NCBI GenBank assembly: GCA_037447605.1 | Contig: CM074805.1 | Coordinates: forward strand, 1,645,361 to 1,709,360 | Length of the DNA stretch: 64,000 nt | Reading direction: 5' to 3' | DNA from: Zygnema circumcarinatum SAG 698-1b | Taxonomy: Eukaryota > Plantae > Zygnematophyceae | Part shown: in pieces, positions 7,858 through 36,100 of the stretch | How the letters are laid out: every line of letters begins with the position of its first letter | Position numbering within the stretch: position 1 is the first letter of the stretch | Notes under the pieces: model-generated | Told to the model about the DNA's origin: nothing | What the model saw: only the letters and a program-made list of their open reading frames with translations | The model's database searches: none | Position numbers and translations under genes: made by a program

Positions 7858-10800
7858 ATGGGAGGATTTTGCTCGAAATGGTTTCCGGACGAAGAGGGGA
7901 TGGAGTCTCTGGATGGGTCGCTGGCTTCTCAACAAAGGTCGGCAGAAGTATGGGCCGGCATGCAGCGTTTGAGTGCCTCTGGGCACGGCTTGTGGTCTTC
8001 CTCTAGTAATGCTGCGAGCAGGCGGGTTCGGGTTGTAGGAGATAATTCGCATTGTTCTCTTTTCGGTCGCTCTGTGGGATGGACTTAGTCAATTGTTACG
8101 ATTTTTTTGAGTTTTTGTTGATGTAGAAATCTATGCTTGACACTTTAGGCCTACAGCTTGAGTGGTGAAACAAAGGAAAACTATTTGTTCAAGTTTTTTC
8201 TTGGTCTTTGTTTGCAAGCCTTTGCTGAATTATATTTCTTTGGGGGAGTTGCCGCCCGCCTTATTCCTTCACTATTGATATGGAACGCGCAGGGAATTTG
8301 GAACTTGTGCATTTTATAAAGAGGAGACTGAAGCAATGATTGACTGCACCCTGCAGGACATATGTATACTTCAAATAGTGCAGGTGGGCCCATTCATGTC
8401 AAGTAAAGTTCAGCCACTTGTAGTTGGCTTGATTATCACTCCGAACAGAGTATCTCCTTCATTTGCATGTCTTTTGAATTTATCATTTTATCTGGCCAAC
8501 ATGAACCTGAACTTTGTTTTTGCCTGCTTTCTTTGCAAACAGAACATCGGGAATTACTCATCACTAGAGCACCTCCCCCGAGACCTTAGCCAGCGAGTAT
8601 TCAGCGAATTAGCCAACCGACATCTGCTGACACCCGCTATTTTTCGAATCTTCAATGGATGTAATCTAGAGGTGCCAGTTTGCCTCAACTTCCGTTTGAG
8701 TCGGAATGAAGTGATTTACTAGCATGGCATTGTGCGCCTTCGGTGCTTTCAGTGCTCGTATTTGACAAACACAAGGTTGGAGCTAAGTGTCCTTTGCACC
8801 TCATGGCTTTTTTGACGTGACTTTGTTACACAACTCACGTTGCCTGTGGGTTGCAGGATGTATCTCTCAAATGCCATCCGGGAATCGCTGATCCTTGGCT
8901 GCACTTGGTTAGCCGGCACAATGCCTCCCTACTGTCTCTAGACCTTTCAGGATGCAGCCAGCTGTCAGACGCGGGTTTGCTGCAGCTGCTGGAAGCTGTG
9001 AACCTTGAAACAGTCTCCCTCAATGGTTGCTTTCGAATTACAAATGTGGGACTCTCGTTTCTACGGGGTCAGTGGCTTAAACAAGCACCTTCACCCTTCT
9101 CATCTGTTTCTTGTGGGACGACTTGTTTTACGTCCTGGGTAATGAATTGTTAATGTCAACAATAATTCTCCGAACTTTGCATGTGGTGGGGCCTAATATG
9201 ACAACTTGAAGAAGTGTGTGGTTACCTCTAGAAACTCGACCGCACAATTGCTGCCAATATGTTTGTTGAAGCACAGTCTCACCCTCTGACTGTTTTGAAG
9301 TTGAAACTAGATTGCATCGATAGCCAAGGAGGGGAGACATTTGTTTGTATTTATGTGGCCATTTGTGCATGGGATGAATGTGTACCTGAAATCTCAGAAT
9401 ATGTACGAAAACAACCTTTCGTCAGATACACGGCCTTTTCTAAGGAATTTCATTCTTTTTATACCTTTTTTTGCAGGCTCGAGCAACTTGAAAAGTGTCA
9501 GTTGCAAGAGATGCCCTCTCATCACAGCTACGGCCTTGGCGTCCTTTTCACACCTTTCGTCACTGAGAACTTTGGATATGGAGCTTTGCCCACGGATTGG
9601 GGAAGGACTAGTGCATATTCAAGGTAATTGGGACAATTTCAGTAAGCACAAAACTGCACCGCTTTTGCATGCGGAGTGGTTACTCACCCATGTAGCGATT
9701 CGCAGAGTTTAGTTGATTTGGACCAGGAACAAGAGCTGATTCCGCTTTTGGAATGAAAAGTGTCTGTGTCGATGTGAGAAATGTATGGAATAGATGCTTA
9801 GGGGTAAGTCTACATGTACCGGATTCTCTTTTTTTCTGCCTCTCCTTGCCCCTAAAGGTGGCTTCCCTTGTGCTAATGGCAGTTGTACTGAAGAATGTGA
9901 TTGAGACCGTAGAGTAGATACTACCGAAATACCTCAACTTTCCGCATGGACCTTGATGTTGCGACTCCTGCTCTCATTGTGGAGGTGGCTCAGGCTTGAC
10001 CAAGCTGAGACGACTCAACCTTGACTGGTGCAAGTCAGCGAGTGACTCGGACATGCGTGCGCTGTCAGCCATGGCGGAATTGGAAGAGCTCAACCTTTCA
10101 TTCTCTAAAGTCTCCGACTGCGGCATCAAGCAGCTGCAAGGTGCCATTCTGATGTGAACCATTTACCTTCCCAGGTGAACCAGGAAGCTGTTTTGTTGCA
10201 GCCAAGCAATGAGAAACTTGGGGAAGCCAGTTCTTGCGTAGTTTTTTGGCCAAGTCATCTTTTGTCATCCTCGGCAATGCAGAATGATAACTGTTCTACG
10301 CATGTAACTAGGCATTATTTTCGCTGGTAGTTTTTTTTTGTTGTTTGGCATAGCTTTTTATATTTTTCAAAGTGGCACTTAGATGACTGTATGTTTTCTT
10401 AAAGAAGAAGAGCTGCCAAGGAAAAACTCTCTCTTATACGTCTCAAAGTTATCTGCTGGGATAATTAGTTTAACAAACCGCCATTCTGCTTTGATGCAGG
10501 TTTGACGAGATTGAAGGTTCTAGACATGGCTGGATGCCCTATTTCTGATTTAGGGCTTTCAACAATTTGTAGTGAGTTCCGTGAGCCTTTTCTTTAGTCG
10601 CTGACGAAGAATGGAATACTGCAAAGGGCTGCCATTAGTGTGATCTGAATAATTCCACCTCACCGACTCCTATCGCAGGTTTTCTTGCAGAAGTTCACGC
10701 CATTGCGAGTTGCTCAATTTTGAGCAAACCTTAGCTCGTCAATGGACTTTCAGTAGTAATCATAACTCTATTGCTATTTGCTCTCGTAGTTAGCCATTCT

Positions 10801-13800
10801 TGTTTTCAGGCTTTGTTGCAGGAGAGATATTGTATCGTATTTCAAAATCTGTTTTTTTTTTTTTTTCTGGCGATAAAACGCTGTTGATGTATGTGGCGCT
10901 GGAAGTTAAGTTTTTAAGTTGTAGGCGAAAGCTGGGTTCTCTGCAGAATTGACTTCCTTGTCGTCTCTCAACTTAGAGCGCTGCCACCACATCACGAGTG
11001 CGGGACTGCAGCACCTCAAAGGCATGTTTGCTCCTTGTGTTCAAATATGTCTGCCATCATGTCGCCCTGCCATGGCACTCGTTCCACTCAATACAAAGTT
11101 GTCAATACGACTGAGGCATGATTTCTTTCTTGTCCTCATGACTCTGGAAGAGGAGAAGAACGAGGCAAATAAATGCGAGCACATGCTGCACTTTTTCCGT
11201 TATTTAAAAGGCGCATGTCTTTTTTTCTGTTTGTCTCTCTCTGTCGTAGGTTTTGCAAGCTAGGCTGGCTTCTTTGTGAAGTAAGCATTGCTCAGTCATG
11301 TCTACATAACAGCTTACATTTGTGGTATCCCTGCGCAGGAATGGTCAATCTTGGCACTCTCAACCTGGCGTATACTAATGTTAGGAAAGGCTTATCTGCT
11401 CTTGAAGGTGGACTTCTCTATTTCAATGTTCACTTTTTCTTCCTTTCAGTTAGTACTTTCAGGTATCCTTGTCAAGGAGCACACAATATAAATTCACTCT
11501 TCAGTTTACTTTTTCAGATACAACTTTTGTATGGAACCCTCAGAGTGTGAACATCAATAGCATGCACTCTCAGGTAGTTTGATTAGTTCTGGGGTTGACC
11601 TGGTTGAAATTGATCTGTTTGGTGGGCAGCCCTTCACCAGTTGGAGGACTTGAGCTTGGACTCCACGGGGGCATCTGACTCTGACATGCGATATGTGGGA
11701 GGTGAGTGCTCTTTCACCTTGCACATGTTTCAGTTGGCACAAGGGAAGCCGGAAGATGCTGCCTCCATTCACCTTTACGATTGGCTAGTATCTAGAGTGC
11801 ATGTTGTCCAGTAAACCGTTGACTGCATACTTGGTTTTTCGAAGTTTCATTCGGCCACACTAGTTTTTAGTACCATCTGCACCTCGATCAGGCCTGTAAT
11901 TTGACGGTGACGAGGTGCCCTGCTGCAGCTCTGGAGAGTCTGCGGAGGTTGGACCTGTCCGACACGCGAGTTGGGGACGAAGGCTTGCAGCGCTTAGGAA
12001 GTGAGGACTGCCATCACATTGTTGCACGCGCTTCCAAAACCTTGTTTGCTTTGGAAGGGCGAGCGTTGCGTGCATCATATTTATCCAATTGATGCTAAGT
12101 CTACAAGGTTTGATGTTAAGGATACAGGTCTCGTGCTTCCTTCCTTTCCATTGGCTGGTGCAACGTGTAATCCTTGACTTGGCTCCTTGCAGATCTGACA
12201 AAATACTGTAGTTTACCCTTTTTTTTTTGTACAAAAAAACTTGGCGAAGCATCTGTCGACTGATGGCACTCTCAAGATAGTTCGATTGCAGCTCTGTTGA
12301 GACGCAACCCGAGAGGAAGAAACACGGGCCAATGGCTGAGTGATGCCATTTCCATTTTTCCTTGGAGGTGGGTGCAGAGCTCACAGGTCTGGAGGCGCTA
12401 AGTCTGAGCTACTCAGCAGTGACAGATGGCGGCATGCCGGTGCTCACCAAACTGCGGGCGCTCACCTCTCTCAATCTTGACTCCCAGTTCATCACGGATG
12501 CGGGATTGGCATGCCTCACATGTATGTTGCACTGTGTGGCTACTATGTGTTGCTTTACAGCAAATGGACGCACTATAAGTGTATCTCAGAGAGCATGAAG
12601 ACTCTTCTGTTATCATCTGTTCGCATAGCTTTTTGGTTTACAGGACACTGCAGCAGCAGTTTCGTTTGAGCAGGTCCACCTTCCTCTGTAACTGAAAGGA
12701 GCAGGATGTGTTGTGTATTAAAGTAGTATTTGGGGAGCTGGAATACGTGGAAAGAATTGATTGCTCTTCCAAGAACTTACATATAGTGAGTTGCTATTCA
12801 AAATCTGAAGGCAGCCCCTTCGGGACTCGTAGAGGAAGCGTTTCACCATGACCGGCAGTGCCGATCTCGCTCTGACCATGTTTGAAATCTGATGTCTGGA
12901 AGGAGTCTATGCCTTAGCTGCTCAGGAGTATGACTCTTGTTAAGTTTCTTCTCTCTCCCTAACAGTGCAGGGATAAATGAGAGGTCGGAAGCAAGCTGGG
13001 CGGTGGAGGAGCAAATGCGATGAACACGGATTAGGCTGTGATTGCAATTTAGACTGCCAGGGGATCAAATGATGTGCCGAACTGAAGGCAGTTGTCAGGT
13101 TCATTCGTTTTGTGGCGAGTCGGTGTTCTGATGTCGAAGGGGGGGATCGGGGAGTGGCTGCATGCAGCTTTGACAGGGCTCACTTCACTGGACCTTTTTG
13201 GAGCCAAAATAACGGATGTCGGAGCGGGCCATCTGCAGCGTAAGTGGCCCCTCAGTAGTATATGCCGAGGAGAAGAACACTATCAGTTTCTCCTTTGACT
13301 CATTGAAAGCAAAAGAACGTGTGCGGATTCATATCTTGACGTCAGAATACCTGGAGCAGTCTGCGTTTCCCGCTTTTTCTGCAATGCTTTGTCCTGAAAC
13401 ACACGCACTACCCTTCATATGCTGCAGACTTCAAGAACCTTCGCAGTCTGGAGGTGTGCGGGGGGAATCTGACTGACTTGGGGGTCGCGCAGCTCCGCTG
13501 CCTGACCGGTCTGAGATCGCTGAATTTGAGCCAGAATATTCGCCTTACTGACAAGAGCCTTGCCTGCCTCGCAGGTGTGACCTTTTTTGTACATTACCTG
13601 CATATGTACTATGTGCTCCCACCTGCTTCGTTTGTACAGAGCCATGAATGTCAGCATCTGCTCCTCACTAGGGGGGTGGAAATGGGCTACAGGAATGGAT
13701 ATGTTGGAGAATTTGAACATCTCGGGCTGCCTTGTGAGCGAAGCCGGGCTGATGCACATCCTTCGGCTGAGCCGTCTCTCCAGGCTCGCCCTCCACTCCT

Positions 13801-13892
13801 GCGAAGTCTCCCGCGGGCAGCTGCAGAAGCTGCGGGCCTCCCCGCACTGCTGCTGGCACCCCGCCCTCTCCGTCACAGGGCTCTCCAGCTGA
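7858..13892 (+). CDS. Leucine-rich repeat protein (RNI-like/FBXL14-like LRRs, At1g15740-like) with N-terminal myristoylation motif
   Basis: Starts MGGFCSK (Gly2/Cys5). Exons encode LEHLPRDLSQRVFSEL, LLSLDLSGCSQLSDAGL, LETVSLNGCFRITNVGL, LRTLDMELCPRIGEGL, LSSLNLERCHHITSAGL, LRRLDLSDTRVGDEGL, LEALSLSYSAVTDGGM, LTSLDLFGAKITDVGA, LRSLEVCGGNLTDLGV, LRSLNLSQNIRLTDKSL and LENLNISGCLVSEAGL; TGA at 13890-13892. Boundaries of exons 1-2 are approximate. Confidence 0.85.
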
Positions 13893-16800
13893 GGGAGGGA
13901 GGCCCTCCGCTCATCTTGTCATTCAAAAGACCTTCAATAATGGCCGGTGCACGGCTGGGAAGCAAGTTTGATGCCGACCTTCCTCGACAAGCGGAAAGGA
14001 TTTGTTGGAAAGGAATGCCGTTTCAGAGGGGGCCAGAATTGGTCGCAAGGGCCTTTGGCATGGCCACGCTCGCACGGCACCGAACGTAGCGGTGTGTGTG
14101 TCTGTGTAGAGGAAGTGCCTGCACGTGCGAGAGCATGGACACGGCCAGAAGTAGACCAGATCAGACTGACTCTGCAGGCTATGGCCCTCGGTCCCCCCTC
14201 CCCTCCCCTTTGTGAATAACCCCCCTCCTGTAAAATGCACTAGTCGATATATTCCACTTGGTATAGCTCCATAGTGTCGTAGCTTTTTTTTTTCTTTTTC
14301 CTTCATAGTCGATGCCTGTTTGCGTCGCCAAGCTGGGGCTCATTGCAGAACACACTTTGTGGGCGCTGCGCACCGAACGATGAACCATGAACCATGAAAC
14401 ATGCATGTCCTTGTGTCAACATTCGCTACTTACCTCTTAGACTTCCGTCTGTACCATACCCTCACGGTTGTGTGCCTGTGTAGTAAGGCAGTTTCGTGCT
14501 GTGCCTGCAACCTGGTTGAGTGAAACTCGAACCATTCAAAGGATAAGGCTTAGTTACTACAGTCTATCCAAGAAACACAGACATCAACTCGGCACTTCGC
14601 CTACCTTCACCTCACCCACCTCCCGTCTTACACCCACGGAGTGAGCTGAAGGATGCGCTTCGCTCTGAGTGTTTCAAAAAGCTTTAGCATTACGTTGTTA
14701 GTACCGTAAAATAAGCCACTTACAGTCAACACGCTTCCACCGCGTAGAGGATGCTTCGCCCTTAGTTGGACCATTTCAATACAGCGATGAGCCAACCAAA
14801 AGCAAATTGACGACAGGTTGCTCCGTTACGCGCACACCGGGCCTTCGGGTGTGCGCGGACCGCACGGCCGCTGGAGGGGCTCGGGCCCGATTTGGTCGGT
14901 CGGGTTTGAACTGTGCCACGCGTCCCGTGGCGGCAGTCCGGCAGGTGGACCCGCAGAGTGGATCTTGGCGGCGGTTGCTGTCGCCCGCCAGCCCCCTCGC
15001 CCACCTGCGACGCCTACGTGGCAGGCGCTGACGAAGGCGGTGACACGCGTCGCGCTCGGATTGGGTTCCGTCACGACGACGCGGGAAATGTGGGCAGGTG
15101 GACCCGCGAAGGAAGGTGGGCGGGGAGGTAGATCCGGTAAAACTGGACATTGATCCGGAATTTCTGGAGGTGGGTTACGAATACACAAGGTATTGATCCT
15201 GGTTGTGGATCCGCGTGACGATCGCGGATAGCGTTTGACTGCTGGCGCCTCTTGGAGGGAGCGCTCCTGGAGGGAGAGGGAGAGGCGAGGGTGAGGCTGA
15301 GGGAGAGGGAGAGGGAGAGAGGGCGAGAGGGAGAGGGAGAGGGAGAGAGGGAGAGAGGGAGAGGGAGAGNNNNNNNNNNACTTGGGGGTCGCGCAGCTCC
15401 GCTGCCTGACCGGTCTGAGATCGCTGAATTTGAGCCAGAATATTCGCCTTACTGACAAGAGCCTTGCCTGCCTCGCAGGTGTGACCTTTTTTGTACATTA
15501 CCTGCATATGTACTATGTGCTCCCACCTGCTTCGTTTGTACAGAGCCATGAATGTCAGCATCTGCTCCTCACTAGGGGGGTGGAAATGGGCTACAGGAAT
15601 GGATATGTTGGAGAATTTGAACATCTCGGGCTGCCTTGTGAGCGAAGCCGGGCTGATGCACATCCTTCGGCTGAGCCGTCTCTCCAGGCTCGCCCTCCAC
15701 TCCTGCGAAGTCTCCCGCGGGCAGCTGCAGAAGCTGCGGGCCTCCCCGCACTGCTGCTGGCACCCCGCCCTCTCCGTCACAGGGCTCTCCAGCTGAGGGA
15801 GGGAGGCCCTCCGCTCATCTTGTCATTCAAAAGACCTTCAATAATGGCCGGTGCACGGCTGGGAAGCAAGTTTGATGCCGACCTTCCTCGACAAGCGGAA
15901 AGGATTTGTTGGAAAGGAATGCCGTTTCAGAGGGGGCCAGAATTGGTCGCAAGGGCCTTTGGCATGGCCACGCTCGCACGGCACCGAACGTAGCGGTGTG
16001 TGTGTCTGTGTAGAGGAAGTGCCTGCACGTGCGAGAGCATGGACACGGCCAGAAGTAGACCAGATCAGACTGACTCTGCAGGCTATGGCCCTCGGTCCCC
16101 CCTCCCCTCCCCTTTGTGAATAACCCCCCTCCTGTAAAATGCACTAGTCGATATATTCCACTTGGTATAGCTCCATAGTGTCGTAGCTTTTTTTTTTCTT
16201 TTTCCTTCATAGTCGATGCCTGTTTGCGTCGCCAAGCTGGGGCTCATTGCAGAACACACTTTGTGGGCGCTGCGCACCGAACGATGAACCATGAACCATG
16301 AAACATGCATGTCCTTGTGTCAACATTCGCTACTTACCTCTTAGACTTCCGTCTGTACCATACCCTCACGGTTGTGTGCCTGTGTAGTAAGGCAGTTTCG
16401 TGCTGTGCCTGCAACCTGGTTGAGTGAAACTCGAACCATTCAAAGGATAAGGCTTAGTTACTACAGTCTATCCAAGAAACACAGACATCAACTCGGCACT
16501 TCGCCTACCTTCACCTCACCCACCTCCCGTCTTACACCCACGGAGTGAGCTGAAGGATGCGCTCCGCCCTGAGTGTTTCAAAAAGCTTTAGCATTACGTT
16601 GGTTGTACAGTACCGTGAAATAAGTCACTTCCAGTCAGCACGCTTCCACCGCGTACAGGATGCTTCCTTGCGCCCTTAGTTGTGACCATTTCAATACAGC
16701 GATGAGCCAACCAAGGGCAAATTGACGACAGGTTGCTCCGTTACGCGCACACCGGGCCTTCGGGTGTGCGCGGACCGCACGGCCGCTGGAGGGGCTCGGG

Positions 16801-17284
16801 CCCGATTTGGTCGGTCGGGTTTGAACTGTGCCACGCGTCCCGTGGCGGCAGTCCGGCAGGTGGACCCGCAGAGTGGATCTTGGCGGCGGTTGCTGTCGCC
16901 CGCCAGCCCCCTCGCCCACCTGCGACGCCTACGTGGCAGGCGCTGACGAAGGCGGTGACACGCGTCGCGCTCGGATTGGGTTCCGTCACGACGACGCGGG
17001 AAATGTGGGCAGGTGGACCCGCGAAGGAAGGTGGGCGGGGAGGTAGATCCGGTAAAACTGGACATTGATCCGGAATTTCTGGAGGTGGGTTACGAATACA
17101 CAAGGTATTGATCCTGGTTGTGGATCCGCGTGACGATCGCGGATAGCGTTTGACTGCTGGCGCCTCTTGGAGGGAGCGCTCCTGGAGGGAGAGGGAGAGG
17201 CGAGGGTGAGGCTGAGGGAGAGGGAGAGGGAGAGAGGGCGAGAGGGAGAGGGAGAGGGAGAGAGGGAGAGAGGGAGAGGGAGAG
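13476..17284 (+). repeat. About 1.9-kb direct duplication (13476-15369 and 15380-17284) flanking a 10-N gap; includes a second copy of the LRR gene 3' exons (15380-15796)
   Basis: ORF pairs are identical at offset 1904 (13587 vs 15491) and offset 1915 (14776 vs 16691). Copies differ essentially only at about 14659-14810 vs 16563-16725. Copy 1 ends inside the GAGAGG tract at the gap. Confidence 0.9.
15370..15379. other. Assembly gap (10 N)
   Basis: nnnnnnnnnn in sequence. Confidence 1.
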
Positions 17285-17625
17285 AGAGGGAGAGAGGGAG
17301 AGAGGGAGAGAGGGAGAGGGAGAGAGGGAGAAGGAGAGGGAGAGGGAGAGGGAGAGGGAGAGGGAGAGGGAGAGGGAGGGAGAGGGAGAGGGAGAGGGAG
17401 AGGGAGAAGGAGAGGGAGAGGGAGAGGGAGAGGGAGAGGGAGAGGGAGAGGGAGAGGGAGAGGGAGAGGGAGAGGGAGAGGGAAGAGGGAGAGGGAGAGG
17501 GAGAGGGAGGGAGAGGGAGAGGGAGAGGGAGAGGGAGAGGGAGAGGGAGAGGGAGAGGGAGAGGGAGAGGGAGAGGGAGAGGGAGAGGGAGAGGGAGAGG
17601 GAGAGGGAGAGGGAGAGGGATAGAG
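17185..17625 (+). repeat. (GAGAGG)n purine microsatellite, about 430 bp, in the probable 5' leader of the DUF1639-like gene
   Basis: Direct reading. Shorter tracts at 7620-7700 and 15270-15369. Confidence 0.9.
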
Positions 17626-21804: not shown

Positions 21805-24800
21805 CTAAAAGAATTGTGTCCTTGAATTGCTTCGTGCTGCAACCACCTGCTTGATAACTCCGGACAAACTCTTCCAATCAATTGGCTTTGTTAAGTAGCC
21901 GTCCAACCCCATCTCCTCCAAGGTACCGTTAGCCTTTGTCAGAACATCCGCTGTGAGGGCATATATTGGCATCTTTGCCGCGGGAGATTTCAAGTTCCTG
22001 ATCGTCTTCGTGGCTGTCAAACCGTCCATTACGGGCATCTGCAGGTCCATGAGGATCATGTCATACGCCTTCTTCTGCACGACCTCTACTGCAATCTGGC
22101 CGTTACCAACAAGCTCCACCTGCACCACAACACAAAAACATTATCCATGAGATCTCAACTCTGGAGATGATCAAGTCAATCTACTCCCTCGGTGTTCAGT
22201 ATTCTTACAAAAAGACGAGGCTTAACCCAACGAGGGAGGAAAACCGTTGCTATACAAACGACAAGAGGGAAGCACTTTCGTGCAACAATTTCAAAGGGCC
22301 CTCAGGGTCAGACTAGCAGAGTGTACTAGCAGAGTACAAAACCCTTCTAATAATTTTCACCCCGTTCAGACACAAACTTAGACGCAGACAATAGACCCTC
22401 GCCACTGAGCGAAACTGAACTGCCATCACCTCACGTAAACGGCAGTTACCAAGCAGATACCATGAAAGGACCATGCGGTTTTGACAGACAAAAACAGAAA
22501 CACCTTCTCTGAGGAGAAACGTCGAAGACTAGGTTAAACATTCTGTAGAACAGTACACCACACGCAAAAGGCAATGTGCTTGCACCAACCTGATGTCCGT
22601 AATGACGAAGCATTTTCTTGATGAGCATCTGGTTCACTAGATTGTCTTCAGCAACCAACACAGTTAAGCTTTCTCCTTCTGTACTCAACGACTTTGTCGG
22701 TGTCAATGGTCGCACAGGGGCTGTGCACTCAATCTTCTCATCGTCGTTGCCAATGAAGAGCATGGAAGCTTCTCTTGCCGGCAAGAGAGCAATATTGAAA
22801 GCAAAAGTGCTTCCAGAACCAATCTCACTCTCGACCCAAATGTCTCCCCCCATTGCATTCACAAGTCCCTTGCAGATGGCGAGCCCGAGACCTGTGCAAG
22901 ACAGATAGATAATTAAGACAGATATAGGACAAGACAGATCATAGACCTCTAACCAAGACCATCTCATTACATTCGCGGCTGTTGAGCTGAGTGTTAGAAA
23001 ATGCCAAATGAGGTAAACCCACACCTGTGCCGCCAAACCGCCGAGTCGTGCTGCTGTCTGCCTGCGAAAATGACTTAAAGAGGCGACCTTGCTGCTCTGG
23101 AGAAAGTCCGATTCCCGTGTCAGTCACTCTGACCTCGAACCACATCTTGGAAATAGCCTTCGGCTTCTTTTCAGGTATAGTCTGACGCTTCCCCGTATTT
23201 ATGCGCAAGCCCACCTCCTTTACAATGTCATCGACGATAGCAGGGGTCCTCCCACTTTCATCTTCCCGCCGGAAATTTGATGAACTGTTGAGATCATTAA
23301 TATGAGCATTTGGACCATTGTTCGTGAAAAGGACTGCTGAGTTCACAGCCCCATCATCCGTAGCCCGTTCCAACATACCATCGTGTCTTCCCATTGGAAG
23401 GGGGCCGCTGCGAGGGGCTTGAGGGGGCTTTCCTTCTCTCACTCCCCCGAAGTTGCGAGAGGTCGCAAACCGTCCTGCCTGCAATTGGCTGCCCATGGCG
23501 TTCTTCTCCGAGACTTCGCGAGGTTCTGCTTCTATGCGGGGAATGACAATTGGGGCAACTCTCTTGGGCTTAGCCACTTTTGTCCACGAGATGCTGATAC
23601 CGCCTGCCTCAGTGAACTTGATGGCATTGCTGACTAAATTGGTCAAAACCTGGCCATACAAGGATAAGACATTGACATGAATCCTCCGAAGTTTACTTCA
23701 AAAACGAGAGCGTAAAGTTGATGTATAAGGGTCAGACATCAGAAGGGCAGAAAAGAAAAAACGATCACTTGCAAGTCCAGTCGTCTGAGACACCTCCGGC
23801 ACATTCCAAGTTGCAGACATTGCAGGACCTTCTTGGACGAAACAGAAGGGGAACAACACCGCATATCTGACAAATTTCAACATTCCAACATGTGTTGCAT
23901 ATAGGTTGAGACACTAGCATTGAAACGAATGTTGGGCGAGCGATGCAGAAACAGTGAGAGATGTGTACCTGCCGAAGCCGGTTCGGATCTCCCCGAACGG
24001 CCCACTCCTTCCTCTGTGGAGTATCAACCTTGAGGTCCAATTTCCGCTCTTGCAATCGTCCCTTGAAAAGAGTAGACACCTGAAAGAATATTCATACGAC
24101 GGATTATGGAGAGCAAGCTACAAGCTGGTTCGTTATTGTTCATCTTTATGGACTTCTGATTGGCAAAAGCTTAGGCAATAAAGAATGTCAGGATTGACAA
24201 GATGTTATCAGCTGGAAGCCATCTTTAGCTAAGGAAACAGTGAGGGCATTTACGCAAGAGCAAGCGAATCACACTGCAACCATGACTGGACATAATTACC
24301 CACCTGTTCTAGCAGCTCTCCAATGGAAAAGTCCACCTCCTCCAATGATAAATGGCCTGATTCGATTTTGGAGAAATCCAAAATCTCATTTAGAACTTGC
24401 AGCAGGCCCTCTGCAGACCCCTGCATAACTCGCACGTATCCAGCTTGCTCGTTCGTGAGAGGAGTCAGACGAAGAAGATCCAACATTCCAAGTACGCCTG
24501 CATGAATATAGACATTGGAAACGTTAAAATGTAACAAGAAAGACCTCCTATCCTTTGTTTATATCGACATTTCAGTCTATCAGAAAGCAAAAGCTACGCT
24601 ATGGTTGTCTTTATGGCATTTCTAGGGACATAAGCCCAGCCGATGCTGCACTGTACATTTCAGAAACCAGCAATAGCCTGGTTCTAATGTGCCGAGCGAC
24701 AAGGAAAGGGGAAGTTTGCACTTCAATCAAGCTTTAATACTTCAACAGGCGAGCTTAAGAGTATCTATTAAGATACTCTTAAGCTCAAGAGTCATCAATT

Positions 24801-27800
24801 ACCAAACATCTTGTCCTTCCTCATCGAAAAAATCTTCGTCCAGGCCCGTACCAATGAAGATATTCATTATGGCATAGCTTATGTTCACCACTGGTTGAAT
24901 ACGTCTAAAAATTCCCCAGTAAAGCTATTTCGCTTCCGTGAGTCGGAACAGCAACTCACAGCATGCCGATTCTACTTAAACTGCTTCACTCCAGCTAGAC
25001 CCACACCCCAAGGGATAGTACCACACCTCCCCCCACCGCCCCCCCACACCCCAATTCTCTAACCTGTCATTGGCGTGCGCAACTGATAGCTCATCATCGC
25101 CAGGAAATGCGACTTTGCTTTGTCCGCCTCCTCCACCACATTGCGCGCATCATGCTCTGCAGTGACGTCATCAAACATCCACACTCGGCCGTGCGTTACC
25201 TTCCCGGTGACGGGGTACGAGCGCAGCCGTAACACGCACCGGGGCTCCTGCAGCTCGAGGACGGCTTCCAGACTCTCCTGAGGGTTCAGGGCAACTGCTT
25301 CAAACCACCTGCAAGGGCACAGAGAAGGGTAATGTGTCCGAATGGTTCAGGCATTCTAAAGGAGTTTTCTTTCGTATCTGAGTCATTGGATTCGGCTGAC
25401 TCCAGCAGAGGGGATTCAGGTCGTCACATATTCTAAGTCCGTCTATGATACCCTATTTGCAAACTAAAGAACTTCGATACTCGTGTTTGTTAGTGGACTC
25501 TACGATCGATGCTCACTGAGAACGGAACAGAGAAGCCTGCAATGTAGAGGAACTACTGGCATCTGCTCGACAATTGGCTGCAGAAAAAGACTTAGGACAG
25601 CCAATAAACTCGATCGATGTGTTCATGTCCTTTCTAAAGCATTCTCTCACGTTCTTTCTCAATTGAAGCAGGCAGGCGATCACTCAAAAGCGGAAACTGT
25701 TTAAGGAAAAACGACTCCTTTGTATATCACTCACCTGTATATCTCCTCTTTTGAATTGCTCCGTTCTGCCAGCCAGTGCATCGCTTCTGCCACCTGTACG
25801 GGTTCCACCTCTCCAGCCCTGCATTCACACCCCCGCCACGAAATCATGGATACCACATGCGTCACGTGCGCAAACACAGAGACATCTGAGAAGTGCTTGC
25901 ATCCTCAGAGAGATGCGACAGGCCTTCATTTCACCAGATTCAAGAGGCAGCTCAAATTAACCCCCCTTCCCCTCCCTGTAGCGAAGTGAAAAGGCAGGCA
26001 GTTGCATACCCAGGCAGGTCTAGTAACTCTGCTGCTGCAGGGTTGATGAGGCAGGGGGCGAGCCCGTCATCCACAAAGATGACAGCTTGCGGCATTCGGG
26101 TGAGAATTGCATCAAAGCGCCGCCCCATCCTCTCGCCGCAGAGGGCTCGCACACGGTTGGCGAGGAGGAGAGGGAGGGCTTGAGCTGCATCTGCCATGAT
26201 CTCTTCCGCTTGCTCAGGCACGTTTGCGGGGTTGACCCACAACGAGTAACAAAGGCCTTCACACCTGTAAGACACTTTGACACGCATTGGTTCAGATTTG
26301 AAGGTAGCAGGGCTCACTAGTCTTCGTTGGACTTTTCTTCTACATGCGCTAGTCTTATGGAGAAGATGGAAACGGAACAGGATAAGACAGCTCATGTATG
26401 TTTTCTGCTGAGGGCGAAGATGAATGAGGGAAAATAAGAACTTTTGTGGACAGTTCGGCTGGAGGAGGTTGACAGCGATCACCAGGCGGTCTGTGGCATT
26501 AAAAGAGCAGCTAGCATGAATTGGATAATATTCAAACGTCGTTATTTCAATGGGCAACATCATCTGCAGCCTTAACCCAGTCTGTGAGATGTCAATGTCA
26601 TTAGAAGCTTACCCCTCCACATCAAAAGTGGTTGCCAAGTAGCGCCTTGGACGCTGACCCAATGCCGCTGCAAGAACACTTGGCAAAAGGATTCCCTCCG
26701 TATCCACCACCTGCCAAATAGAGCCATTCATGAGTTGAAACCATGCAAGCCTGAAGGCATTGAAAATCTGCAAGGATACAGGGGCTGAATCACCTTTACG
26801 CATCAATGTATAAATCACACATAGTCTACTGAATTAGAGAGAAGATGGCACGAGAGAAAGTTCTACCTTTCCTTTAGCTGCATTCAAAATTGCCTTGCTC
26901 AAACGAACAGGTAATGTTATGAGACCCGGCGGTTCACAAAGCACGGTCTCTGATACCCTGGACGGAGTCTGAATTATGGCTGCTATGGTCACGTCGGCCT
27001 GTAAAGCTCGCGCTATTATTCCAAGAACGGACTGTGGGAGGTGAAAATGCGCGTGAGCTAACTGATCCTCTTCCGTCGCATCATTCGGAACTTCCAAAAG
27101 CCCCAAGGCCCCCCTGTGCTGGGTGCCAAGGAGAGAGGCTGCAACTCCGTCTGCTGATGCCCCTCGAGATGGGGACTGACTTGGAGACGATGCATAAGAT
27201 GAACTGATGCTTCCAGCAGGAGATTTGGAGGCCCTTCCCATGCTCCCGTCCTCATGGTTACTAAGACCTAGAATCCCTGCTGCTGCACCATAATAAGCAT
27301 GCGGTATTGGATGCCGTGTAGGAGAGGCAGAGGGGGAGAGCAGGGGTGACCCCCCAGATGAACCGCCAAGAACTCTGGAAGGACTACTTCCAGAACCATA
27401 AGGAGGGGCAGTAGCCACACCCTGCAGTCCTGAAGCAGCCCCGGCAGAGTATGACCTCGTAGGGGCCATCCAGTCTCTCGCAGGTGAAGCATCTGGAGAA
27501 TCAGAAAAGTCGCCAGATCCGAAGCTCAAGTGTAGATGTGAATATCTTGTCGAACTGGGAGCAGATTTGGGGTTTGAATACTCTCTCAAGCCTCCCATTG
27601 TCATTGTCCGGCCTGCAAGCTGTGAGCCGTACTGATTCCATCTTGCGCTCCCATAAGGTGCGTGGCTAGGGATGCCTCCCGGAGGAGACATTTCCGGTGT
27701 TAATCCTCGAACCCCGCCATCCTGTGCCTGTGAACCACTAGAATACGCGGGTGAAACTCTTCCAGAGGAATACATTACACCTGGCAATACGGCATCTCCA

Positions 27801-29071
27801 AGAACTGCAGCCGCAGTTCCAGTGTATCTGTTGACAGTTGTGCTGCCTGTAGGCCTTGAATCTGTTGATGCTGGATGAAAAGCTGCCACACCGTTACCCA
27901 AACCCATCAATGCTGCAGCTGCTCCTTCATGCCTCGCACTTCCTGCTCGCGTCCCATCGCTCCCATCCTCGTGCCCATTTCCCATGCCAAGTGCCGCCCC
28001 TGCATGTCCAGCACTACTTCTGTCCAAAGCCTTTTCCGACAAGATTGATGCCTCCTGCACCTCCGGCGAATGTCTCCCACCCAGTGCAGCTGCTGCACCC
28101 TCTTGTCGACCGCCATGATCCACTCCATGAACGGTAACAAGTCCAAGGGCTGCTGCAGCAGCGCCGGCATGAGGGGTGAACCGTGAACTTGGAATTCGGC
28201 CAAGAGATGCAGCAGCAGCACCTTCATACCCCCCTTGGCCCCTCCTCCCGCTAGTAGGAGAGTCAAGCCTCAGTGCAGATGCTGCCGCCCCAACATGCCC
28301 TTCCCCAGCCCCCCAAGGGCCCCTCGAGTCCCGTGATGGTTCAAGGTTCAGCACTGCTGCAGCCGTCCCCCTGTGAGAAGTCTTGCCGAAACCACCAGGT
28401 GAACTTGCTGGCGAAGAAAAATGGCTGCTAACAGGAGAATCGGCAATAGGATTGATATTTCCCACCAACTGCCCAGTGGCATAACCAGCACCAATTACTT
28501 GCGCTGCTGTTCCGGCTACCCGAGAAGGGAAGTCTCCATTTGGTATTCCAAGTGTACCAGCAGTGGCATGGTTCTTCTGTACAGTACCATTAGGCATCCA
28601 AAATGCCGGAGGAGGCGTCCATCCATTATATGGAATCGCGGATGATTTCCCCTGTAAACTTCGCCGAGAGGAGGTCTCAAAACTGTCTTCTCTGCTCAGT
28701 CTAGCTTCATGCCTGCCACTTGCTGTTCTGATAACGACTTCCTTTGCTCCCACAACATCCACTAGCCCACCACCATCTGCCCTGCTGTTCCTTTCTGCAG
28801 ACTTGTCTAATGAACCGGAGTCGTGGCCATGGGCATGAGGCCAACTGTCAACTGCCCCACTTGATGCCGGCATTACTGCGTAAGGTGACAGCTGCTCCGT
28901 GGAAGCAGGCGGCATCAACAGAAGCAATCGCTCTTGTATGCTTTCGGGTTCCCCAAGTAACCGCCTTCTCTTCGAAGCGTGAACGCCCCCGTCAATTCCC
29001 AAGCCTTTACAAATCTTAGCGTCACCCACTTCGGCACCTTCCAGCGTGGAGGCTTTCGCCTCACAGCTCAC
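21805..29071 (-). CDS. Hybrid histidine-kinase-like protein: long low-complexity N-terminus, GAF-like, PAS-like, HisKA (His to Tyr), HATPase_c, receiver domain
   Basis: Exons: 26834-29071 ORF (745 aa low complexity); [11 protein letters not shown]... (about 26620-26770); PAS-like [31 protein letters not shown] (26010-26264); 25735-25818; [17 protein letters not shown] (25064-25308); GVLGMLDLL...[11 protein letters not shown] (from 24497); GDPNRLRQ; [48 protein letters not shown]; [26 protein letters not shown]; TAG at 21805-21807. First in-frame ATG is at 28915; true start unresolved. Confidence 0.85.
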
Positions 29072-29434
29072 AAGTGCAGCCAGACCTTTTGAAGTCTTCC
29101 AAAAGGTTGTTTCCCTACTCGTACAAATTTGTAAAATTTCCTTTGCGTAATGTTATTGTACGAAATTAAGCATGGAGAGGGTTTTTCGCAGTTATCTACT
29201 GACAAGGGGATAAGGTCGAAGGGGAGAAATACTGAGTTAGCTAATTCCGTGCCAAATCTCTAACTACTATCAATGAACTGTTTCCAGCCACTTCACAGCA
29301 GGTTCCTACAAGCTCACCCAGTTAGCGAATCGATGTCTCTGTGATCAGCACCAACATATTCTAAGAGGCCAAAACTAACATGGCACTAACCAAAGTATCT
29401 GTACTCCCTTCTATCTTCTACTAATTCTACAGCA

Positions 29435-31383
29435 TTACAAATCGTGAAAAAGATGACGCTTGAGGACAGGGATCACTATTTCTGGAGACGAGAGCTGTGG
29501 AAGATGTCCATGTGTTGGAAATATTTCGACAATACTCTTGCCTCCAAGAGACTGGTGTAGATAATCTGCAACTACTACAGGTACTGCAAGGTCCTTCGAA
29601 CTTTGTAAAATATGACAAGGGACCGATACCTGAAAATCAAACAAGGGAAATGGTGTTAACGCCATCATTACAAGAATCAGCACAATGACAACGAAACACA
29701 TATGCATCCATAGACACGCCCATAATGGGATTTTTCCATTCCTCCTATCAAGTTCCTCCTTCCAATACTCGTGCAACTTGCCACCTTGATACAGAGCCAT
29801 CTAGATTTGAATCCTCTATCAATGACAACTGTCATTCAGCCAACACAATACAAGTTTTAACATTCCATACGATACCATTCGAAACTTCACATGGCCTTTG
29901 ACAAGGTTTGCCATGCAAACTGAAACACGACTCGTCTAATTCAAGAAAAGGTTTTACCACAATTCAGGAAGCTCAACACAGCTGAAGCTTACGTGTGGAA
30001 GGACTTTGCGCAGATCAGACTGAAAGATGGTTTTTGCAACGCTTAACGCGATATCAGGACGAATACTAAAGAAAGTTCTCCCAAATTCCTGAACAGCATG
30101 TGATTCGATGTCAGCTCCAACAGCTAATGGGGCGAATCCTGAGACCCACGCCTTGAAATTCGATGACATTGCTTGAAACAGCTGGTTGAGATCCTCCTGA
30201 TCAAACCCACCATAATAGTCCTTGTCATTCAAATACCTGCAAGCAGCATAGTAGCCCAGAAGACTGTAAGCATGTGCATGTCAATGCAAGTCTCCCCCTC
30301 AATTTCACAGTTTGATGAAATTCGTATGTGGCTGGTGACAGATATCCCGTGAGCTTATGTTCCTAGTGCCTAAATCGACTGTCTGTGGATTCATGTCCTT
30401 ACCATGTGTGAAGGGTTTTACTGAAGAACTGGTGTCATAAGGGAAACAGACTAGTCAATCGAATTGAAGAGACCAATGAGACACCCTCATTTCACGTGGC
30501 GTTCTTTCCACGTTCTTTTCTTTCACGGCACGAGCAAGCAATGAACGATTCAGGCATCCTCTGCAAACTGACGAGCTGTATACAACGTCCTGAGCAACGG
30601 GACTACAAAAAACTGTGTTCCTGTCTCCAACACTGGAAAGGTTGGTATGGTGTGGTTTCAGATATAAGTAATGGATTACAATCTACTGCGTCCCTCCAAA
30701 TTTTAAATGCCTAGGCATACCACGTGAATTTCTAACGCGTCCTAACATCGAAAGCATTTGGGTTAAAACAATAGGCTGTTTAGGAACATGCCTAGAGTAA
30801 TGGACAGATTACTTTGTCGTCACATTTTCCTGCTCAGGCAACGGTTTGCTCTTTTCTAATCCTGAGAGAGCTGAACTCCTCTACGACCAGGTCGGGAAAA
30901 AGTCCTCATTTCATGATTTTGCATTGTTATAAGGACACTGAGGACGGAAGGTCACTACGAAATTCCAAACGTAAGGTATATTTGCCTGTTTAAGTGTAGG
31001 CAAAAGTCCAGGCATTACCTTGGGGATGCAGAGATTGTGATGATCTTGCTGAAAATTGTCGGGCGTTTTATGGACGCGATGTAACCAATCATTCCCGAAA
31101 CAGAGTGCCCCACATAGATGCAACTCGTAATGCCCAGCTCATCCAGGATGGCCAGAAGGTCTTCAACGTAGGCATAGAGATTTGAATATCGGGGAAAGGA
31201 AAACTTATCTGGGTCAGTGCTGCCAGCCCCAGCTAAGTCAAAGGTAACGAGTTTGTAATCATCGATCAGGTGAGGGATGACATATTGCCAAACCGATTGG
31301 TCAGTTCCAAAGCCGTGCCCGAGTACAACTATCTGCTCACTTGATCCTTGAACACGAGTATTATGGGTCTCCAACAAAGACAT
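29435..31383 (-). CDS. KAI2: KAI2/D14-family alpha/beta hydrolase (KAI2-type), 3 exons, 267 aa
   Basis: Exons 31019-31383, 29993-30236 and 29435-29629 total 804 nt. Motifs [20 protein letters not shown] (Ser nucleophile), SASPRY (KAI2-type Tyr), [38 protein letters not shown] (Asp), GHLPQLSSP (His). Intron 1 falls at the SPR/Y position recalled for plant KAI2/D14. Confidence 0.95.
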
Positions 31384-33107: not shown

Positions 33108-36100
33108 TCAGGCATCCGTCAAAAGCACGGCGTTCAGCAGAATTTTCACAGCGCGTTCGCCGAGGGCACTGTCCTCCAGTCTCCAACTGCACTTTAATTT
33201 CCACGTGTGGCCCCTGCTTTCCTCTGCAGCCTTCCCTACATTTTCAGCCGTTGGCATACGTGGATATGTTACGTCCACATCCAAAGCTGAGTTCCTTTCT
33301 GGGATAAGTTCCGCATGGAACGACCCCGCTACAATGCAATCGCGTCTCCTTACCAGCACGCCCCTCCCCAGCCATCTCTCTAATTCCGCAAACATGGAAT
33401 GTAGCAACTTCCTGCTGTCTAAGGCATCCCTTTTCTTCCCCATCCCAATCTCAGAGGCCCGCGTTCCGTCTGACATGGCATGTACATCATCGTCATCATC
33501 ATCATCGCCCTCCGGCCCCTTCACCTGCTCATCAGCCTCCACATTCTCTCCAACTTGTCCAACCTGTTGACTTCTCTGGCTTTTCTCACCTTCAGTCAGC
33601 TGCTTCTCTCTGTCGTCCCTGTTCCCACGGTGCTCTCCAAGAAGGCCGTGCTCACCTTCATGTGCCCCCACAGCAGCTACTGGCCCCTCTCCCTCCCTCG
33701 ACTCAGCAGTTCTCACCGTTACATCATGCTCCTCCGTCTCACTGGTCTCGTCTACTGGAATCTTTTCCAAGTCCAAATCGAATCGTGCCGTCTTTTGAAG
33801 GAGGATCTGCCTTGCTCCGTCTCCACCGCCTTTCTCTCTACCGGGAGCCCCTGCATTTGGTCGCTCACTTTCAACCATTTCCCTCCCATCTCTACCCGAC
33901 AGAGCTGCCTCTCCCTTCAGCCCTGGCTCAAAACCTAATGCCTCCTCCTCGCTTCTGCACATTCTAAACTCTCCTGGCCGTTCTTCACGAATACGGTATG
34001 TACAAGTGAATGTGACTCGCTGTTCTCTGAGGCCCAGCACCTCAGAAACTTCACTTGCGTCGAGCAACCGAGGCTTCAGCAGCTCCATTCCCACAAGTAT
34101 GCCCTCTACAGGGATGCCCTTCCGCGGACGGGGCCAGTTTCCAATGGACCCAAGAAGCCCAGTATCACCGTACATCCTAGCCCTCCCTTCACCTTCATCC
34201 TCAAAAAGAGGATCTATGCCTTCATCCTCCAGTTTCCTGCCAAGCCCAACACTGTCTTTTGTCTGTTCTCTGCCTCGTCGCTTACCAACAACTCCTGACT
34301 GCGCGCTTGTGATTTTCGTGCTTTCAAACGGCGCCACTTGGCGTTTGATGAGACAAGGAGAGAGCTCGACTTTCTTGACCCACTTGACCGGAACTGTGAC
34401 CGTGGCATGATTCGGCGGGTCAAAGCAGGGGATGTCCAGGTCCTTCGCAATTTTTTCTCGAAGAATGGCCATTTTTGGCTTCTCACCATGCACCAGCATG
34501 ACATGCTTTGGTGCTAGATGTCGAATAAGGTCCATGATTCCCTTTGAATCAGTATGGGCTGAAACTGAAAGCTGGTGGACCTGCAACCACAGCGCGATTG
34601 TCAAGGCAATCGTAAGTAAAGCTTTAAAGCCTTTCCAAAAAGAGACAGCTAACCCTTCCCATGCCTTGCATCCTATCTAGCTTAACCATAATCCGAACTC
34701 AGTTCTACCCCTCCCTAACATACTATTAGAACAAGAAAAAAAATCCTAGGCCTACGCCCTAACTGCAACTGCATCCCAAGCCCTGAGCCTAATGCTAACC
34801 TCAACTTTAGTCCTAGCCCTACCACTACAACACTTGAACTCATTCAACTGTAGCCTAGGTCCAACACTAATCGTCACTTGATACCTCTACCCCGACTCAA
34901 GTAGTCATCCAAATTCTAACCCGAACCCCGACGCTAATAAAATCCTAATGCTAAGCCTGTTCTCCAAACGCTACCCTAGCATGATAGAGCCTTATCCAAG
35001 CCCGAACACAAACCCTACTGCTGTCTTCAATTCTGAGTATGCTGTGACGCCCACCTGACACTGCACATCGACATGGCTTCGTTTGTCAAGGTCCACCCGG
35101 TTCTTTCTGCCAGCTTGCAACCGGCTTCCCACTGTTCCGCCAATGCAGTACCTGTGAGAACGATTTGCACACAGACATGGATCCATGGTAAATCCTGAGT
35201 ATAAAGCATTTAGGCCTACCTATACTCTCAACCCTTCCTTAAAGACCACAAGTGATACGAGTCAATCATGGACAAAAGAGAAAAGCTAGAGAATCATGGA
35301 AAATACAGGACCCTTTCAAATACCACAGCGCGTATTCACTTTTGAACCAGCAATCTGCTACGACTCTTGAGTTTTAGTCCATCGTTTTTCGCTGCCTCGA
35401 AGATGACCGGCATACGTCAGCAAGAAACGCGCTTACAACAAAGTTAGCAAATTGATACATACCCTGGCAAAATGATCATATTTTTGTCTGATGGCGCCCA
35501 TTTCTTGAAAACTTCCAACGACAGGCCACCAGTTAGCATGCCGGGAGTGGCGAAAAGGACACATGGTCCGGGCGCATCAATCTGCGAACGATCAAATGGA
35601 GACACTTTGGGATGGAGGAGGGCACCCCAACCATATCCATCTCAGATTTTGAATGAAGATTCAACTTTCTTTTGCCAAAGCTCAAAAGTGTGTAAAGTGC
35701 ACGGATACAGTTCAAGTACGCCAAAAGGGCGCCTAATTTGAGTGGCCCAGTCATAAGGCATTTGGGACTGCCTTGAACCAAAGTTCAAGATTAATGGGGA
35801 AAGTAATGCCTATAAAGCATCAATGTATTGTCAAACTAAAAACATTGCGTGGTTAATGAATGCATTAGTTCTGTTCGGATTGTAGCAAATATGGTTAAAG
35901 TAGACAGCCATTGCATTTTCTTGCAACTTATTGCTCTGATTTTATAAGTACTAGGCCCCGCGAAGCCTCACATTCTGCTGACAACATAAACAGGCAGCAA
36001 ATGACGAAATGCTCTGAATGAGAATGAGAGTAGAGTGAATCAGGCGACACGAGGGAAGGGGGAACATCACAACTCCACGCTTACTCGCTATAGGGTTCAC

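Follow-up and report, generated by a model that had tools for sequence, protein, structure and literature searches.

A KAI2 gene and an adjoining hybrid kinase gene in the streptophyte alga Zygnema circumcarinatum, probably derived from a bacterial RsbQ-type operon

Introduction

What KAI2 acted on before the MAX2-SMXL pathway existed, and what it acts on in streptophyte algae, is the question raised by a nuclear, intron-bearing locus of Zygnema circumcarinatum SAG 698-1b. The stretch of DNA analysed here, referred to as the window, comprises 64,000 nucleotides (nt) of contig CM074805.1 in GenBank assembly GCA_037447605.1 (positions 1,645,361 to 1,709,360 of the forward strand; coordinates below are counted from its first letter). 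In this window a KAI2 hydrolase gene is directly followed on the same strand by the gene of a PAS-containing hybrid histidine kinase, which offers a concrete candidate partner. Our reading, to which we give a probability of roughly 0.6, is that KAI2 and the downstream kinase descend jointly from two adjacent genes of a bacterial operon, which came over together and have remained linked, and that KAI2 acts on the sensor part of the kinase.

The bacterial side of this comparison is well described. Nadezhdin, Brody and Price 2011 (PMC3183031) counted 45 cases in which RsbQ and RsbP-PAS genes adjoin, the outputs being phosphatases, kinases (some of them hybrid) or cyclases, and among Gram-negative bacteria the module is known with histidine kinases as well as hybrid kinases as output (PMC3183031). 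Recently, the origin of D14/KAI2 has been put in proteobacterial RsbQ in a preprint which describes the RsbQ of Stenotrophomonas rhizophila as a proteobacterial relative of D14/KAI2 that binds and hydrolyses strigolactone analogues, and which mentions no partner gene (10.1101/2025.03.14.642314). In the liverwort Marchantia polymorpha, KAI2A acts via MAX2 and SMXL (10.1101/2020.11.17.387852). In the literature that was searched, with incomplete coverage, no paper was found that ties KAI2 to an adjoining kinase or to a homologue of the RsbQ partner in plants. Discussion of how rsbQ reached plants has so far treated the transfer as a single-gene event. The bacterial RsbQ module and the bacterial ancestry of KAI2 are already known, whereas the eukaryotic, intron-bearing form with a hybrid kinase is new.

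Results

The gene pair of the alga

The two genes and the spacer between them are listed in the direction of transcription.

31019..31383, minus strand: KAI2 exon 1; ATG at 31383; nucleophile Ser94 within the GHSVSG motif; the loose end of an RNA contig at 30238 runs into this exon
29993..30236, minus strand: KAI2 exon 2; RNA joint 29626/29990
29435..29629, minus strand: KAI2 exon 3; carries Asp216 and His245; stop codon TAA at 29437-29435
28916..29434, minus strand: spacer from the KAI2 stop to the first ATG of the kinase; transcribed unbroken; 11 stops in the kinase frame; upstream open reading frames of 6, 11 and 6 codons; no AATAAA
27047..28915, minus strand: part of kinase exon 1 that encodes the N-terminal extension (~620 residues, low complexity); no Pfam match; eight motifs of the G-A-A-A-x-L type
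26120..27046, minus strand: GAF-like sensor domain; encoded by the last part of exon 1 (to 26867), by exon 2 (26710-26613) and by the first part of exon 3 (from 26264); assigned by hhalign against bacterial RsbQ-partner sensors, blastp against loci L066 and L036, and the model and fold search of a bacterial homologue
25158..26119, minus strand: PAS domain that contains a helical insert and closes with DVT, a DIT-like motif; encoded by exon 3 (to 26010), by exon 4 (25818-25735) and by exon 5 (from 25308)
25064..25157, minus strand: linker and H-box, end of exon 5; H-box MSYQLRTP, with the Tyr codon TAT (25088-25086) at the position of the phospho-acceptor His
22590..24497, minus strand: rest of HisKA and HATPase_c; N, G1, F and G2 boxes intact; insert of ~140 residues; exons 24497-24304, 24079-23969, 23649-23025 and 22891-22590
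21805..22119, minus strand: receiver domain and stop codon; Asp in the ILMDLQMP motif

KAI2 consists of three exons (31383-29435, minus strand) separated by GT-AG introns, the second of which is backed by RNA contig joints. Its open reading frame (ORF) of 804 nt encodes a product of 267 residues in which the catalytic triad Ser94/Asp216/His245 is intact and lies in the expected motifs. Database queries were made with exon pieces, while the spliced KAI2 and the spliced kinase were analysed by scripts only. Against solved structures, exon 1 matched the Physcomitrium proteins KAI2-like C (E 7e-54) and KAI2-like E (E 2e-52) better than D14 (~1e-42) and Bacillus RsbQ (3e-25), which places it nearer to KAI2 than to D14 or RsbQ. 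The full algal protein shares 72-76% identity with bryophyte KAI2 and aligns without internal gaps to a plant KAI2 of 273 residues. A database search with plant KAI2 and the aligned exon pieces of the window returned only angiosperm KAI2.

The kinase gene has 10 exons coding for 1425 residues, with its first ATG at 28915 and its stop at 21805 on the minus strand. RNA contig joints establish five of the introns; the others were placed by GT-AG sites, reading frame and homology. A low-complexity region of ~620 residues is followed by GAF-like, PAS, HisKA, HATPase_c and receiver domains; the PAS domain, at about residues 817-931 of the kinase ORF, thus lies behind both the disordered region and the GAF-like domain. 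Pfam recognised PAS_8 weakly and, in addition, HisKA, HATPase_c and Response_reg. All ATP-binding boxes (N, G1, F, G2) and the receiver Asp are intact. The first kinase exon (735 residues) had no match in the protein database, a weakly informative result because the region is of low complexity and the length window left out the full protein. The disordered extension contains, at 27148-28369, eight copies of a motif of roughly [HY]-x-G-A-A-A-A-x-L-G without Pfam match; one of them, GAAATILG, is conserved in Marchantia paleacea immediately before the GAF-like domain (locus L113, ~13050).

These gene models agree with a preliminary description of the stretch, made from the letters alone, which had proposed an intact KAI2 with its stop at 29435 and a co-oriented long ORF of a PAS two-component protein next to it. 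The long ORF (29071-26834, frame open from 29152) turned out to be exon 1 of the 10-exon kinase gene, and its start lies 363 nt from the KAI2 stop, the kinase ATG ~520 nt.

As an alternative identity, the kinase was considered as an orthologue of the moss PHK proteins, which have a PAS-PAS-HisKA-HATPase-REC build (PpPHK1/2, PMC6137987). This is probably not the case, judged by scaffold identifiers alone: in M. polymorpha the PHK homologue is assigned to Mapoly0082, MpKAI2A to Mapoly0023 and MpKAI2B to Mapoly0031.

The same pair in Marchantia paleacea

An equivalent arrangement was identified in Marchantia paleacea (GCA_014180765.2, MUAA02000015.1; locus L113, coordinates of that locus). A KAI2A-type gene at 10001-12371 (+), which groups with a Riccia sequence in the hydrolase tree, is followed 207 nt further 3' on the same strand by a gene coding for a HisKA/HATPase/REC protein of 928 residues (12579-17547, +). 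According to tblastn this neighbour is the orthologue of the algal kinase, with identities of 45-55% in the sensor segments, 82% in HisKA, 70-78% in HATPase and 62% in the receiver; the sensors are 55% identical over 319 aligned positions, and several intron positions are common to both kinases. When the whole window was compared with L113 by tblastx, only KAI2 and the kinase were collinear, while the flanks are unrelated. The pair has thus been kept in two deeply split streptophyte lineages with differing neighbours. Moreover, the spacer of M. paleacea up to the annotated kinase ATG (12372-12578, 207 nt) contains no ATG and is too small for a separate 3' untranslated region, promoter and 5' untranslated region.

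Bacterial relatives of the sensor are linked to RsbQ-like genes

A metagenome scan with an alignment-based query built on KAI2 exon 1 yielded 80 loci, 18 of them eukaryote-like and 62 bacterial and RsbQ-like; the same scan with exon 1 as a single protein gave no match. Wherever the contig goes on behind a bacterial RsbQ-like ORF, a co-oriented partner gene follows directly 3', and in many cases its start codon overlaps the stop codon of the hydrolase. The partners at these loci are of three kinds, PAS-HisKA-HATPase proteins, PAS-hybrid kinases and sensor-GGDEF proteins, an arrangement that matches the bipartite module of PMC3183031. In one library protein of 770 residues (P0063) an RsbQ-like hydrolase is fused to PAS-PAS-PAS-GGDEF, representing a natural receptor-transducer fusion.

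When the algal sensor (ORF residues 641-945) was compared with all metagenome loci, it matched only ORFs located directly 3' of hydrolases. The best matches, L066, L067 and their relatives, are proteins of ~440 residues consisting of an N-terminal domain, PAS and GGDEF. In L037 the same sensor is joined to HisKA-HATPase, and the alignment continues from the PAS domain into the N box (28% over 275 residues). Details common to the family are an insert in the PAS domain (PGA..VEP..A.AM..L) and the ending GR[VIL]W[ML]F.D[VI]T, the PAS domain closing with FDDVTAE in the alga, FDDVTSE in Marchantia and FTDVTAD or FRDITSE in the bacterial relatives. The algal sensor showed no detectable similarity to partners of the N-terminal-PAS type in the examined loci. 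Beside the hydrolase and sensor-kinase pair of L037, whose hydrolase is with 46% identity among those most similar to KAI2, an IS66 transposase gene is located (3262-4884), indicating a mobile context.

With a hidden Markov model built from five bacterial sensors, the score of the algal protein was 43.5 bits (E 1.5e-9 at Z = 1e6), above those of every locus ORF outside the sensor family and of 200 shuffles. By hhalign, a profile of alga and Marchantia aligned with 30 bacterial partners over 306 columns across both sensor domains (probability 99.7%, E 2e-24). An atlas search with the sensor exon of Marchantia returned generic PAS clusters only.

When bacterial genomes, one for each species, were scanned with this sensor, it was detected in 19 Stenotrophomonas species and one Sphingobium, and tblastn with the sensor gave matches in all 20 of these genomes. 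Without exception (20/20) an RsbQ-like gene ends ~15 nt before the sensor gene, and these RsbQ-like proteins are 42-47% identical to algal KAI2 over ~260 residues. A weak sensor match was also found in a Lysobacterales genome, where no RsbQ-like gene is present. As modelled by AlphaFold (pLDDT 83), the sensor of S. rhizophila comprises an alpha/beta domain, a helix of 34 residues and a PAS domain. Its best fold match is the GAF-PAS part of E. coli DhaR(N), which was solved in complex with DhaK and DhaL, followed by PdtaS and phytochrome GAF-PHY; the TM-scores of 0.3-0.44 are modest and support the fold class alone.

The hydrolases group according to their partners

A careful maximum-likelihood tree, which is unrooted, was built from 73 hydrolases. 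They fall into groups of 33 and 40 on either side of a long branch with 1.12 changes per column and support 100/99. The smaller side holds 22 streptophyte KAI2 proteins, all 10 bacterial hydrolases with the same partner sensor class and L035, whose partner is truncated; the larger side consists of RsbQ-like sequences with other partners. Streptophytes and the Stenotrophomonas/Sphingobium group are united with support 98/75. Algal KAI2 itself falls into the streptophyte KAI2 clade (99/98), and in the KAI2 tree it groups with Closterium sequences (97/85). L035 and L037 form long rows on the streptophyte side, and their join was flagged by the tree program. A narrower group of streptophytes and all sensor-class hydrolases minus L035, drawn after seeing the tree, was rejected by the approximately unbiased test (p 0.02).

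The hydrolase tree is congruent with the sensor homology. For each of the two algal genes, the closest bacterial relatives are found in the corresponding gene of a single operon type, in which order and orientation are alike. The simplest account is that the transfer from which plants obtained KAI2 also carried the partner gene, and that selection has preserved the linkage.

Transcription across the spacer

RNA contigs from four runs of the same organism, belonging to three studies, were placed on 24300-30260. In runs X1 and X2 one contig extends from spliced KAI2 through the spacer, which is left unspliced, and through kinase exon 1 across the junction into kinase exon 2; in this bridging contig KAI2 exon 2 is joined to exon 3, and its loose end runs on into KAI2 exon 1. 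The KAI2-bearing contigs of runs X3 and X4 reach to ~28133 and ~28283, i.e. into kinase exon 1. Transcription across the spacer between KAI2 and the kinase hence has no gap, and a spliced form of the spacer was not seen in the four runs. A read-through or fusion protein can be ruled out: although the frame is common to both ORFs, the 11 in-frame stops intervene and no joint lies in the spacer. A truly dicistronic KAI2-kinase mRNA is conceivable at somewhat less than even odds.

Two minor alternative joints were recorded in the same data, one a frame-shifting skip of 122 nt inside KAI2 exon 2 (30087-30210, depth 20.7 in run X4) and one skipping 122 nt in the kinase (26490-26613, run X1, depth 7.6). 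Next upstream on the same strand (33108-34604) lies a gene whose product ends in an RMMBL domain, as in RNA-processing nucleases of the CPSF73 / Integrator-11 type. The window contains one assembly gap of ten N at 15370-15379.

Discussion

Origin and possible function of the pair

The conserved pair in Marchantia, the homology of its sensor to RsbQ-linked sensors and the grouping of the hydrolases together argue that the pairing did not arise by chance. Common origin and co-inheritance of KAI2 and the kinase are in our opinion very probable. In the ancestral operon, the gene of an RsbQ-type hydrolase would have preceded that of a sensor protein composed of a GAF-like domain, a long helix and a PAS domain and joined to an output domain. 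The pair would have entered the streptophyte ancestor by horizontal transfer; subsequently introns would have been gained, in the algal lineage also the long disordered N-terminus, while the operon order would have been retained with a distance of a few hundred bases in at least the alga and M. paleacea. If so, a whole bacterial sensing module consisting of receptor and transducer was transferred, and its operon order has been kept in a nuclear genome.

Regarding the present-day function, analogy with RsbQ and RsbP-PAS suggests that ligand-bound or ligand-hydrolysing KAI2 might contact the GAF-like/PAS sensor, and that this contact would alter the activity of the HisKA/HATPase/receiver part. 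Both proteins would be made together, from one transcription unit in common or nearly so. We lean slightly towards a functional coupling of KAI2 and the kinase in extant cells. A further-reaching scenario is more tentative, namely that the original output of KAI2 was a two-component pathway without MAX2/SMXL, in which the hydrolase acted directly on the GAF-like/PAS sensor; the operon-like, possibly dicistronic unit would have come from bacteria before the alga-liverwort split and would still be active beside MAX2 in streptophyte algae and liverworts.

The preliminary description had suggested an RsbQ/RsbP-like signalling module with output through a phosphorelay, either ancestral or re-assembled. 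Gene order, the RsbQ-linked homology of the sensor and the grouping of the hydrolase bear out the module as such, but the sensor is not of the RsbP-PAS class of 2011, since it keeps a DIT-like motif and its PAS domain is not N-terminal. Of the two histories, the ancestral one is favoured. The adjacency, for which uniqueness to this genome had been considered, recurs as KAI2A with an orthologous kinase 207 nt downstream in M. paleacea. Expression of the two genes, for which independence had likewise been considered, is not visibly separate, as RNA contigs run from spliced KAI2 through the spacer into the kinase, and the RsbQ-linked relatives of the kinase that had been asked for exist in form of a GAF-like/PAS sensor family always found behind an RsbQ-like gene. 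Concerning the phosphorelay, the Tyr in the algal H-box makes a classical version doubtful.

Several observations weigh against the joint descent with continued signalling from KAI2 to the kinase. The phospho-acceptor His of the algal H-box is replaced by Tyr (MSYQLRTP; Tyr955 when the ORF is counted from 29071, residue 903 when counted from the first ATG), at a codon where genome and RNA contigs agree in all four runs; a classical phosphorelay starting from the algal copy is therefore doubtful. The phenotypes of MpKAI2A are explained by MAX2/SMXL, so a kinase output is not required. In a synteny check of a few annotated streptophyte KAI2 loci, covering 10 kb around KAI2, no kinase was found at three paralogue loci of Closterium and at one locus each of Physcomitrium, Selaginella moellendorffii, Calypogeia (KAI2B-type) and Sphagnum. 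Likewise, the 18 eukaryote-like metagenome KAI2 loci (50-63% identity), many of them on short contigs, gave no kinase match. The KAI2 transcript contigs that are closest to the algal gene (L107-L110, from Logan assemblies of SRR8128902-07; 83-85% identity) stop 290-390 nt past the stop codon and contain no kinase sequence. In the alga, the depth in runs X3 and X4 is ~36 in the KAI2-bearing contig versus 98-119 further downstream, with a step at roughly 28150-28280, which is compatible with 3' bias as well as with a separate start site of the kinase, and contigs from short reads cannot prove one molecule carrying both ORFs. Finally, 15 AUGs lie between the start codons of KAI2 and the kinase, which makes leaky scanning of the green-algal polycistron type (PMC7896298, PMC11291117) unlikely.

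The H-box His is present in the Marchantia orthologue (MSHELRTP) and in bacterial L037. From the residues at these positions, the algal kinase is probably not autophosphorylating in the classical way and may signal via its intact ATP-binding and receiver domains, and the Marchantia copy may be a classical autokinase. At 25086-25109 the alga has a His seven residues before the Tyr, where Marchantia has Gln (KSQFLAMMSH). Seven residues correspond to two helical turns, and it is pure speculation that the His has been shifted along the same face of the helix. At the Selaginella locus (L116), a gene for a protein of 1121 residues lies 90 nt 3' of KAI2 on the same strand (11193-15240); it has no Pfam hit on record and is unlike the kinase.

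Alternative explanations

The linkage might be nothing but a relic. The pair would then still stem from an operon, its adjacency would persist perhaps because of promoter or terminator sequences in common, KAI2 would signal only via MAX2-type partners and the kinase would sense something else. The explanation of the MpKAI2A phenotypes by MAX2 and SMXL (10.1101/2020.11.17.387852), the broken pair at most streptophyte loci checked and the lost His of the algal kinase, which could represent decay, all fit this explanation. We nevertheless regard it as rather unlikely, because the tight linkage in the same order (207 nt and ~520 nt) has outlasted a deep split despite unrelated flanks, and because a sensor that is 55% identical between alga and liverwort, together with intact ATP-binding and receiver motifs, points to selection on the kinase as well as on the pairing.

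The direction of the transfer might also be the reverse, or two transfers took place, if streptophytes had given the pair or the sensor to plant-associated Proteobacteria such as Stenotrophomonas and Sphingobium. The bacteria found with this sensor class indeed belong to plant- and soil-associated genera and the hydrolase tree is unrooted, but pairs of RsbQ and a PAS partner are widespread in bacteria with several outputs (PMC3183031), the bacterial genes show no traces of introns and are organised in typical overlapping operons, and the published origin of D14/KAI2 lies in proteobacterial RsbQ (10.1101/2025.03.14.642314), which makes this direction improbable. Least credible is a chance neighbourhood. 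In a genome rich in histidine kinases, a kinase beside any given gene is not very rare; however, the orthologous pair of M. paleacea, identical in gene order and orientation, the homology of the sensor to strictly RsbQ-linked bacterial sensors and the congruent hydrolase tree leave next to no room for coincidence.

Joint descent of KAI2 and the kinase with continued action on the sensor can be approached experimentally, as the presence of the pair in Marchantia makes it testable by knock-outs, kai2a/max2 epistasis and butenolide binding or phosphotransfer assays, which are routine. Furthermore, for the S. rhizophila hydrolase, for which no output is described in 10.1101/2025.03.14.642314, an obvious candidate is its neighbour, a diguanylate cyclase that carries this sensor.

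Comparison with known systems

Like the RsbQ/RsbP-PAS module (PMC3183031), the algal pair has a hydrolase gene directly upstream of and co-oriented with a gene for a PAS sensor and its output, and unlike it, the algal pair is nuclear, intron-bearing and eukaryotic. In the RsbP-PAS class the PAS domain is the N-terminal-most domain and lacks the C-terminal DIT motif, whereas the algal PAS domain stands behind ~620 disordered residues and a GAF-like domain and keeps DVT at its end. Closer is the unnamed operon of Stenotrophomonas and Sphingobium, which shares the homologous two-domain sensor, the gene order and the orientation, and whose hydrolases are placed on the KAI2 side of the tree; it differs by a diguanylate cyclase output instead of the hybrid kinase, a spacer of ~15 nt and a sensor identity to the alga of 23-28%. 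Its metagenomic relative L037 has a kinase output. The pair of M. paleacea is orthologous to that of the alga, with the same order and strand and with introns in common, while its kinase of 928 residues has a short N-terminal extension and has kept the phospho-acceptor His.

Nuclear polycistrons of green algae (PMC7896298, PMC11291117) resemble the locus in that two ORFs on one strand are separated by a few hundred bases and lie under unbroken RNA coverage; theirs depend on leaky scanning past a short, AUG-poor upstream ORF, whereas here the upstream ORF measures 804 nt, 15 AUGs precede the second start and the coverage comes from short-read contigs only. With the KAI2-MAX2-SMAX1/SMXL pathway of land plants the locus shares the receptor family, as expressed by the 72-76% identity between algal and bryophyte KAI2. 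The output of that pathway is ubiquitin-dependent proteolysis, whereas the candidate partner of KAI2 at the Zygnema locus is the adjoining two-component protein.

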